Source of the DNA: Paragordius varius
Taxonomy: Eukaryota > Animalia > Nematomorpha
DNA: 64,000 bases
Direction of reading: 5' to 3'
NCBI GenBank assembly: GCA_964247055.1
Contig: OZ176054.1
Span: forward strand, 8,494,001 to 8,558,000
A model generated the notes under the pieces. That model did not search any database. It saw only the letters and a program-made list of their open reading frames with translations, and was not told the DNA's origin. Position numbers and translations under genes: made by a program. Positions 13,023 through 15,084 of the stretch are shown in pieces. Each line of letters starts with the position of its first letter. The first letter of the stretch is position 1.

Positions 13023-13576
13023 CACTTGGATACAACACATGCGTGTCAGTCCTTCGATTCAAATTGAGGTAGTTGGATGCCCCAGGCTTGTTTAAAATTA
13101 AATATTTGAAAAATATGGAATAAATTAAAACCATGGCATTTTGCACTTATATAACATTAAAGAACCGAAATATAATAAAAAACTTATTTAAAAATACTTG
13201 ATATTAATTTTTCAATGGTAAAACCATAAAGGTAAAAATTTAGCCTACATAACATGTGTACATAAGCTAAATATAATATTAATGCAAAATATACCACTCA
13301 ATGTTAAATGAGATTTTTATAAAAAATTAAACTAAATTTTAGGCTTAAATCAAATAAACACGAGATTTCAAAAATGTTGCAAAATAAAAATGGCGTCGAA
13401 GTAGTTGATATGGAACATTTTTTGCAAAATTTAATTTTTTTCGATATTTTGACCTATTTATATAGTTTTTATTAGGATAGAAGCATAAATTTAAATTTGA
13501 ACCGTTTCTTTCATTAGATTCTTAAAAAATTAAAAATTGTCTGGTGTATTTAGATGCCCCAATTTGAATCGAAGTG
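13023..13576. mobile_element. MITE with TTAA-type ends (piggyBac-like), copy 1
   Basis: Ends read TTAA|CACTT ... AAGTG|GTAA. An inverted subterminal motif CTTCGATTCAAATTG(A/G)GG / CCCCAATTTGAATCGAAG is present. A homologous copy lies in opposite orientation at 43224-43792. Confidence 0.65.
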
Positions 13577-14222
13577 GTAAACTGACCAAAGTAATGCTCC
13601 ACTTGCTAGGCGCATGCATCTGGCGATGGAATTTGATTTCCGATAAGACATTTTGAAACACCACCATCTAATATTTATTAACATTTAATTGGTGCGGGCA
13701 TCTGGTTGATCTCGATGCTAGTTTAATACAAATAAATTATATTCAAAAAATCGCATACTTTGCCATTAATTAATATTAACATAATTTTGCTAGACCGTAC
13801 TTTATGTTAAAGGATATTGATAACCGTATAAAACCATTTAAAATTACTTTTAAACTTTTCATAGTGTAATTCGTTCAATATTTGTCTTACCTCAAAATTT
13901 TTATTAATAAATTATTGCCATAAATCTATATATAAAACGTATTTTTTTATCCAAATTTTGTAATACGATTTATATTATTATATAATTATACAAATGTTTT
14001 TATACTGTTTATTCAAAATATCTTAAAATGCGACTTTGCATAAACTTTTAATATTATACGTCCAAAATCAGGAGCAAAAATATCTTGATAATATATATTT
14101 ACATATATTATCTCAGGGAAATCTATTAGGATTATCATGGAGTTAAGAATGTTATTTACACTTTTGTGGTAAATACCTAATATCAAAAAAAGGTTTGCTC
14201 AATATATATGAATCAGAATATA

Positions 14223-14857
14223 TATAAATCAAAAGGAGTAGAAATAGTTAGTCTATCTGGTTGCAGGTTGGACATATTAGTATATCCTAATTAGCAACAG
14301 AGACTATAAGAAACCCAATTTTTGTTGACAGTGTTTACCACGTGTCATAGTGTGAGACGCGTTTCGTCCTTGTTGTGGACTCATCAGTCACACATAATGA
14401 ACACGAGTAAACACTGTCAGTTGAGGAATTATATATATATTGAGTTTTATAGAATTCGAAACCGAATACAGTCGGGGAAATCAATATTTCAGAGCTTAGA
14501 GTCCATATTGGACAACAGATTATACTGATTTCAGCCAGATATTATGACTCCTTATAATCCCTAAGCCAGGATTAAGCTTTTTATAATAGAAAATCAGAAA
14601 ATTTTTTGGCGGAAGGCGCCATCTCCTTAAAGTTATAAATCAAAAGGAGTAGAAATAATTAGTCTATCTGGTTGCAGGTTGGACATATTAGTATATCCTA
14701 ATTAGCAACAGAGACTATAAGAAACCCAAATTTTGTTGACAGATTAGGATATACTAATATGTCCAACCTGCAACCAGATAGACTAACTATTTCTACTCCT
14801 TTTGATTTATAACTTTAAGGAGATGGCGCCTTCCGCCAAAAAATTTTCTGATTTTCT
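14223..14857 (-). mobile_element. Non-autonomous, internally deleted Penelope-like (retrozyme-like) element carrying a hammerhead ribozyme
   Basis: Flanked by direct repeat aatcagaatatatat (14211-14225 / 14858-14872). A 109-bp direct repeat (14223-14331 vs 14634-14742) gives a 411-bp period. 115-bp inverted arms lie at 14588-14702 / 14743-14857. The hammerhead is at 14326-14419. Minus-strand ORF relics read MAPSAKKFSDFL and YKKLNPGLGIIRSHNIWLKSV*. Confidence 0.75.
14326..14419 (-). ncRNA. Type I hammerhead ribozyme
   Basis: Minus strand reads GUGUGA-CUGAUGA-GUCC-ACAACAA-GGAC-GAAA-CGC-GUC^UCACAC. The core is intact, stem II is 4 bp, and stem I (GUGUGA/UCACAC) is extended by CGUGU/ACACG and UGACAGUGUUUAC/GUAAACACUGUCA. 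Predicted cleavage is between 14356 and 14355. Confidence 0.93.
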
Positions 14858-15084
14858 AATCAGAATATATATGTTTTATCAGGATATTTTTTATATAGCC
14901 AAATTTTGTGGCCACAGTTATCATTAAGATTCATCTACTTTAAAAGGTCATAAAATATATGATTTTATAAAACAAATATTTTTTTATCTTAACCGTAACA
15001 TAATACCAAAATATATATAAATTTTCGATTAGGAAATTTTGATTATGGTTTTAACTCTTTTTATTTGTACATACATTATATAAT

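Follow-up and report, generated by a model that had tools for sequence, protein, structure and literature searches.

A polymorphic insertion with a hammerhead ribozyme and the architecture of Penelope-like elements in the genome of Paragordius varius

The DNA considered here (the window) is a stretch of 64,000 nucleotides of the nematomorph Paragordius varius (GenBank assembly GCA_964247055.1, contig OZ176054.1, positions 8,494,001 to 8,558,000 of the forward strand). At positions 14226-14857 it contains a 632-bp insert, which is bordered by two identical 15-bp copies of AATCAGAATATATAT, on the left (14211-14225) and on the right (14858-14872). The last three bases of the left copy can also be read as bases of the element (u1-u3 in the numbering given below), so the length of the duplication is 12-15 bp. 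This agrees with an earlier examination of the same letters (the sequence-only reading), which described the region 14211-14872 as a complete and young mini-retroelement carrying a ribozyme; all the sequence features that it listed are present. The G+C content is low (35.5%), the longest reading frame within the insert is 68 amino acids long, and there is no open reading frame (ORF) in it for a reverse transcriptase (RT) or a GIY-YIG endonuclease (EN). We consider it probable that the insert is a non-autonomous, ORF-less retroelement of the Penelope-like element (PLE) type, which carries a canonical animal type I hammerhead ribozyme and could equally be called a retrozyme-like mini-PLE.

The insert consists of 1.26 units of a 411-bp monomer and of a 116-nt inverted arm, and it includes a single hammerhead with an intact core, on the minus strand. 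The unit is numbered on its sense strand, u1 being position 14636 and u411 position 14226. Repeat analysis gives a direct repeat of 109 nt (14223-14331 and 14634-14742) with a period of 411 and two mismatches (14247G/14658A and 14319T/14730A), in keeping with the roughly 1.3 tandem units that had been reported. It also gives an inverted repeat of 116 nt, rather than the 115 previously counted, between 14743-14858 and 14587-14702, with a 40-nt spacer and one mismatch, at 14658/14787. The complementarity between the inverted arm and the distal copy (14223-14291) is 100%. The match of the arm to the distal copy at a variable site, to which the sequence-only reading drew attention, is seen, and it is explained by a single private G>A change at 14658.

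The insert can be described as two arms in head-to-head orientation. Arm A (14226-14742, minus strand) is made of u306-u411 followed by u1-u411: the complete unit occupies 14226-14636, and its outer end, u411, is the first of two 3′ ends that are fixed in the family, while the upstream partial unit (14637-14742) forms a direct repeat that resembles a pseudo-long terminal repeat (pseudo-LTR) and starts at the 5′ limit u305/306. Arm B (14743-14858, plus strand) is made of u346-u411 (14743-14808), which would be a second, 5′-truncated cDNA in the opposite orientation, and of a "tail", u1-u50 (14809-14858), which the insertion has at only one of its ends and which stops at the second fixed 3′ end of the family; its last base, 14858, overlaps the duplication. 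Because arm B ends at the fixed position u50, we regard it as a separately primed second cDNA; a snap-back copy of the neighbouring sequence would end at an arbitrary base, and this origin was rejected. The "inverted 5′ arm" of the sequence-only reading therefore exists, but its end is the canonical u50 end of the family.

The reality of the insertion is established by the comparison of positions 13400-15080 of the window with the contigs of four public runs (X1-X4). Each run has a contig in which 14225 is followed, via GTATTATCA, by 14881, while the letters of the window after the second 15-mer (14873-14881) are GTTTTATCA; the contigs are thus devoid of exactly 14226-14872, which corresponds to the insert plus one 15-mer, and the empty site retains exactly one 15-mer copy. 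The empty allele in contig 20 of X3 spans 458 nt of the left flank and 51 nt of the right flank. Within the assembly, the 458-nt left flank occurs once, except for a dispersed repeat at the insertion point and weak partial matches (about 70-76%, including one of 71% further out), and the right flank is likewise single copy outside the short dispersed repeat at the insertion point. Contigs that cover the filled right junction with zero differences are found in X1 and X2. Since these two runs contain both the empty and the filled state, the insertion is either hemizygous or polymorphic, and we refer to it as polymorphic below. Both mismatches of the direct repeat are private to one copy, the letters of the family being G at 14658 and A at 14319. 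These two changes in 632 bp have been gathered since the insertion, which is recent; the adjective "young" is justified both by these private substitutions and by presence and absence among the contigs.

The type I hammerhead lies at 14334-14406 of the minus strand (Rfam HH9, 35.3 bits, E 1e-6). The score is below the gathering score of 52, and the short helix III (2 bp) lowers it. Every nucleotide of the core can be read directly, as can the GUC site. The core sequence CUGAUGA is found at 14381-14387 and is followed, further on, by GAAA; helix I has 6 bp (GUGUGA/UCACAC), helix II has 4 bp (GUCC/GGAC) and a loop ACAACAA, and helix III has 2 bp and a 2-nt loop, within the palindrome ACGCGU. Cleavage is predicted to occur after GUC, between 14356 and 14355 (between u281 and u282). 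This architecture is that of the canonical metazoan type I motif (helix I of about 6 bp, helix II of about 4 bp and a short palindromic helix III), whose helix III is too weak for single-copy cutting, so that cutting involves a dimer of two paired ribozymes (Cervera and de la Pena, PMC4209133). The lone hammerhead of this copy, with its 2-bp helix III, would need a partner ribozyme, and the window copy would be unable to release a monomer by itself. Cofolding of two ribozyme copies with RNAcofold did not reproduce the dimeric helix III, a fold which energy models miss, so that a dimer is proposed on the strength of the palindrome ACGCGU and of the literature.

Helix I is extended by a long closing hairpin (u218-u311, 14326-14419, minus strand; −44 kcal/mol, z = −6.0), and the recurrent 5′ limit u305/306 sits 6 nt inside the 3′ strand of this hairpin. 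Several other Rfam matches were rejected as hairpin artefacts far under their thresholds: those to the microRNA precursors MIR5998 and MIR8562 (71 bits for a gathering score of 180, and 69 for 211) and one to a Bacteroides sRNA.

In the 110.6-Mb genome there are 119 matches to the unit. Of 144 candidate matches, 40 were scored, and 30 loci were retrieved and mapped; these correspond to at least 18 independent insertions, with identities of 83-97%, in agreement with the idea of a multi-copy, ORF-less family that bears a hammerhead, the core of which is kept in most of 23 distinct copies. In this count, four loci that share their flanks (L007, L009, L010 and L011) are considered as one event, as are two other flank-sharing loci. 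The four loci (C10:2.883M, C6:7.863M, C2:5.641M and C1:11.676M, respectively) also have the duplication GGCATTCAAATAA in common, and they are one insertion of the family that was spread later with its host repeat. The family includes a subfamily which is about 75% identical to the 411-bp unit and 93-96% identical within itself, and whose copies are near-palindromes of about 880 bp. Contigs of X1 and X4 also contain a variant joint from 14587 to 14315, with TAGAAAATCAAGAAA between, where u322 is followed by about u36; the corresponding unit would be about 124 nt shorter (about 287 nt), and it was not found among the fetched loci.

The layout of the window copy is that of the family: two arms are placed head to head with their 3′ ends outwards, the inner breakpoints vary from copy to copy, and the outer ends are fixed. 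For one arm, the end is at u410/411, and u411 recurs in 10 other independent copies; the other arm crosses the unit junction and ends at u46-57. This pairing is observed in 14 of the 15 informative insertions, ten of which belong to the main subfamily and four to the 75% subfamily, which therefore have the same paired-end architecture; the exceptional insertion is doubtful and may consist of two nested events. If the two strands chose their start sites independently, at most half of the insertions would have mixed ends, and the observed 14 of 15 would then have P = 0.0005. A duplication of 9-16 bp is found in 13 of 14 paired-arm insertions (13-16 bp in nine of the main subfamily, 9-13 bp in the others). 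Nine arms cross the unit junction, and u1, wherever an arm reaches it, is followed by u411. Among the mapped loci, arm length does not go beyond 1.26 units. There is at most one hammerhead per arm (18 loci), and where a copy has two hammerheads they are on opposite strands, which implies that no copy seen could release a monomer for circularisation. Last, the 5′ limit u305/306 is common to four insertions (L001, L005, L006 and L014) that differ in their flanks and partner arms.

The known marks of PLE insertions are frequent 5′ truncation, partial-tandem pseudo-LTRs, an adjacent inverted 5′-truncated copy, and a 30-40-bp tail which is often present at one end only (Craig et al., PMC8557442). 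In work with a purified PLE protein, both strands of the DNA were cut and extended, and reverse transcription began at two sites inside the RNA, the tail being the segment between them; ribozyme cleavage was not required (Frangieh et al., PMC11167929). The PLE-type architecture that had been recognised in the window copy (partial tandem, inverted arm and long duplication) is found across the family, and it suggests the following mechanism. The RT/GIY-YIG endonuclease of a PLE, acting in trans, would nick the two strands of a target rich in AT at a distance of 15 bp, and each nick would prime reverse transcription from u411 or from u50, two fixed start sites inside the RNA that are separated by 50 nt. 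One cDNA would reach the 5′ limit of the template (u306; 517 nt, arm A) and the other would halt early (u346; 116 nt, arm B); the two cDNAs would then be joined head to head between 14742 and 14743, and repair would yield the 15-bp duplication. The template would be a linear RNA of more than one unit, running from its 5′ end through u305-u411, u1-u411 and u1-u50, so that its copy would appear as 1.26 tandem units. In this scheme the empty allele, the duplication and the insertion itself, the intact core of the ribozyme, both fixed ends and the shared 5′ limit are observed; the enzyme, priming on both strands and the state of the RNA are inferred.

Since all the arms that reach u1 enter u411, the template always spans the unit junction. 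Since the arms are capped at 1.26 units and four of them stop at u305/306, the comparison of copies makes a linear template whose 5′ end is fixed more likely than a rolling circle. The circular template that the sequence-only reading considered is not supported by these arm lengths and ends, nor by the single hammerhead of the window copy. The limit u305/306 is located 23-24 nt downstream of the predicted cleavage site; transcription could start there, or the enzyme could meet a strong stop. The cleavage site matches neither of the 3′ ends, and neither end of the insertion is defined by ribozyme cleavage.

The genome contains autonomous PLEs which could be compared to the insert. In one family, the unit of 2478 bp has an open frame of 788 amino acids with the motifs PKLHK..PLRPI, YVDD and GIY-YIG, and the copies are 95-98% alike; it is found at L063:4204-7551 (G000:C1:4914203-4917550) and also in L064 and L065, with inverted 5′-truncated partners. 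The tail of this element is 35 nt long and ends exactly at the ATG of the ORF. The nearest Atlas clusters combine RVT_1, an animal helix-turn-helix (HTH) domain and GIY-YIG; a phmmer search of the PDB with the protein gave no match. Neither Rfam nor a pattern search detected a hammerhead in L063-L065, although a degenerate look-alike (UGACAAA, a hairpin, then GAAA) is present at the expected place. In the intact copies, the element ends and the flanks overlap, so that the limits of the target duplications are ambiguous. A second PLE lineage is represented by an inverted pair of 5′-truncated copies at L037:689-2206 (G000:C5:6761455-6762972), whose arms of 647 bp are 98.8% alike and each carry a different hammerhead, CUGAUGAUGCCUAUGGCGAAA, about 75 nt from the 3′ end. 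GIY-YIG matches related to this lineage are found near contig ends (C7:7794, C3:14411901 of 14419445, and C28), and it may be that these PLEs are subtelomeric.

The full-length parent predicted by the sequence-only reading, in which the unit would be associated with an RT and a GIY-YIG domain, was not found: a search that covered the unit matches of the whole genome, the GIY-YIG matches, the RVT_1 matches and 13 PLE loci revealed none that shares the unit with an RT/EN frame. The best E value in a blastn comparison (word size 7) of the unit with the 13 PLE loci is 0.5, and there is no unit match within 10 kb of any GIY-YIG match. The same reading described an ORF start abutting a C-terminal relic, on account of which an RT/endonuclease core would have been deleted. 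The frames it quoted exist, but they are 13 and 18 codons long. When a unit dimer was compared by blastx with the PLE proteins available, the matches were at chance level, and the best of them (E 0.12) is to residues 179-204, which are not the C-terminus; this part of the reading is not supported.

A different origin is suggested by the ribozyme itself. In a classical animal retrozyme, tandem transcripts would be cut by the hammerheads into 411-nt monomers, a host ligase would circularise them, and an RT rolling around the circle would leave a 1.26-unit insert. Animal non-LTR retrozymes have in common with our element that they are non-coding and low in G+C, that their monomers are a few hundred nt long and that they bear the canonical type I hammerhead, a motif that is assigned to them (PMC7229834) and in which helix III is palindromic and weak; their duplications are longer than 4 bp, they have no LTR, primer-binding site (PBS) or polypurine tract (PPT), and they co-occur with autonomous PLEs. 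The 411-nt monomer is inside their reported range (150-450 bp), the arms that reach u1 all continue into u411, as expected if the templates contain the unit junction, and no genomic locus was seen with two full units, which could supply a linear dimer. However, these retrozymes form dimers to long arrays with a ribozyme in every unit, whereas the copies of our family are dispersed, with no more than 1.26 units and one ribozyme per arm; pairs of ribozymes are on opposite strands, so that none of the copies seen is able to release a monomer. Copying around a circle would give no fixed 5′ end, whereas four arms stop exactly at u305/306, and both 3′ ends are fixed at positions other than the cleavage site; fixed ends on both sides point to a linear template. 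It is also relevant that PLE insertion in vitro uses uncleaved RNA (PMC11167929). We therefore consider the circular route as unlikely, and the PLE-type mechanism as the probable one.

Another reading is that the insert is a SINE-like (short interspersed element-like) sequence mobilised by a LINE (long interspersed element) of the RTE or R2 type, as has been suggested for the SINE-like hammerhead repeats of schistosomes. Intact LINE reverse transcriptases are abundant in this genome, and two copies of the 75% subfamily are 60-270 bp from RTE open frames. One of these copies (L061:5185-5843, G000:C7:2427184-2427842) is merely inserted into an RTE-type LINE frame, which resumes after it (...LRWFGHVERR...), with a 13-bp duplication of its own, ATGATGGTAAATC, and the two LINEs are unrelated. 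The element has no 3′ tail in common with a LINE, nor a poly(A) or microsatellite tail, and head-to-head arms whose two fixed ends are internal and separated by 50 nt do not bear the signature of a LINE, which makes this explanation very improbable. We are just as sceptical about an origin at the level of DNA, as a foldback or MITE-like (miniature inverted-repeat transposable element-like) transposon or as a palindrome resulting from an error of replication or recombination, with a ribozyme-like motif. The 116-bp near-perfect inverted repeat with its 40-nt spacer, the near-palindromic subfamily copies of about 880 bp and the weak matches to microRNA precursors could evoke such a structure, but the latter are far under their gathering scores, and the outer termini are not inverted repeats of one another, since one arm is offset by the 50-nt tail. 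The inner breakpoints are variable while the outer ends are fixed, as expected of 5′-truncated cDNAs. The duplications produced by cut-and-paste transposons are shorter than the 13-16 bp seen in the main subfamily.

Among known systems, the PLEs that have an endonuclease (Penelope/Poseidon, Neptune) resemble the insert in their partial tandem, their inverted 5′-truncated copy, their one-ended tail, the richness of the target in AT and the location of a hammerhead within the repeated part (PMC8557442, PMC4209133, PMC11167929). Unlike these PLEs, whose single ORF encodes a telomerase-like RT and a GIY-YIG endonuclease, the 411-nt unit has no such frame, and so could only be a non-autonomous derivative; its tail is 50 nt long, while the published tails have 30-40; and its hammerhead is canonical (6/4 bp), whereas that of PLEs is a "minimal" variant with a long helix II. 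Chlamydomonas MRC1, a non-autonomous element of the Chlamys type, is also an ORF-less PLE derivative that makes pseudo-LTRs and head-to-tail insertions (PMC8557442), but elements of this type are devoid of canonical hammerheads and resemble their autonomous partners at the 3′ end, whereas here there is a hammerhead and no similarity to a partner was found. Plant LTR retrozymes are also non-autonomous retroelements with hammerheads, but these are of type III and lie in true LTRs, together with a PBS and a PPT, 4-bp duplications, 600-800-nt circles and mobilisation by Gypsy, none of which is seen here (PMC4918200). The insertion also differs from what is observed with human L1, where internal priming is occasional and variable, while two fixed start sites are the rule in our family. 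In the twin priming of human L1, each target strand primes a cDNA, and the result is a 5′ segment that is inverted inside a single duplication.

Several observations weigh against the conclusion that a PLE moved this insert as a linear RNA. The 411-nt unit has no sequence similarity to either of the two PLE lineages of the same genome, so that the mobilising enzyme is deduced from the scars of insertion. No copy has the full structure of the inferred master, the closest (L002) starting at u330, and throughout the assembly identity to the copy studied here stays below 98%, the nearest (C9:3641198-3641588) being 95-97.5% identical. With 40 of the 144 candidate matches scored, longer arrays or a parent may have escaped notice, and a second hammerhead family forms three-unit arrays, which shows that multimeric templates exist in this genome. 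Regarding the polymorphism, the flank of the empty allele differs from the window by about 4%, and presence and absence are deduced from assembled contigs rather than from raw reads, in runs of unspecified type.

The second hammerhead family, whose core is CTGATGAGTGCTAACAAGCACGAAAC, has 128 exact copies, often in opposite-strand pairs 200-700 bp apart; at G000:C4:11695920-11697053, three tandem copies with a period of 444-445 bp (C4:11695920-11696809) are followed by one inverted copy. The element of the window is inserted in a dispersed repeat of the host, whose left part occupies 14140-14225 and whose right part occupies 14873-14910; many matches of 83-95% in the genome are found for 14143-14194 and 14859-14910, and contig depth peaks there. 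A 26-nt inverted match spans the insertion (14076-14101 and 14866-14891), and it may be that this short host repeat is MITE-like. Another dispersed repeat, of about 128-133 bp, is located at 13455-13582 of the window; it has at least 1578 candidate loci, with about 86% identity, and no Rfam match, its summed contig depth is about 10,000 times that of single-copy sequence, and some contigs contain head-to-tail joints of 128-129 bp. Elsewhere in the assembly, G000:C2:1.86-3.16 Mb contains, on one chromosome, dozens of identical RT open frames of 1234-1236 amino acids, spaced by about 14 kb; they may belong to an R2-like element that occupies a ribosomal DNA array.

The presence of hammerheads in the repeats of PLEs has been known since 2014, and among them are pairs that lie 100-700 bp from each other on opposite strands. 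Non-LTR retrozymes of 150-450 bp were described in 2020, with PLEs as suspected mobilisers (Cervera and de la Pena, PMC7229834), and the retrozymes of vertebrates have been proposed to be non-autonomous PLE derivatives (Li et al. 2026 preprint, bioRxiv 10.64898/2026.07.22.740005). The suggestion that our family is undescribed may thus hold for its name, but elements of this kind have already been reported. What this locus adds is a clean polymorphic insertion, together with two fixed 3′ ends that are used one each throughout the family and a fixed 5′ limit. These ends and this limit tie an element with a canonical hammerhead to the integration mechanism of PLEs, and they argue for a linear template.

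The mobility of hammerhead repeats in animals has so far been argued mostly from co-occurrence and from the homology of vertebrate pseudo-LTRs. Here, individually resolved and dated insertions in an invertebrate-type genome bear the scars that a purified PLE enzyme makes in vitro, which is direct architectural evidence for the mobilisation of ribozyme mini-elements by a PLE enzyme, and which bears on the question of a linear or a circular template. There is also a consequence for annotation, in that automatic tools see such copies as microRNA hairpins or palindromes. Going further, we tentatively suggest, as an idea that may well prove wrong, that in this genome the elements with canonical "retrozyme" hammerheads move as RNAs that are linear and terminally redundant and whose 5′ end is fixed at u305, by a PLE-type integration that primes both strands, each insertion obligatorily using one of each of the start sites 50 nt apart. 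If this is true, the use of one start site of each kind would fit a dimeric RT-EN bound to two adjacent RNA sites, and the fact that the insertion is still polymorphic would mean that the system is active now and open to experiment.

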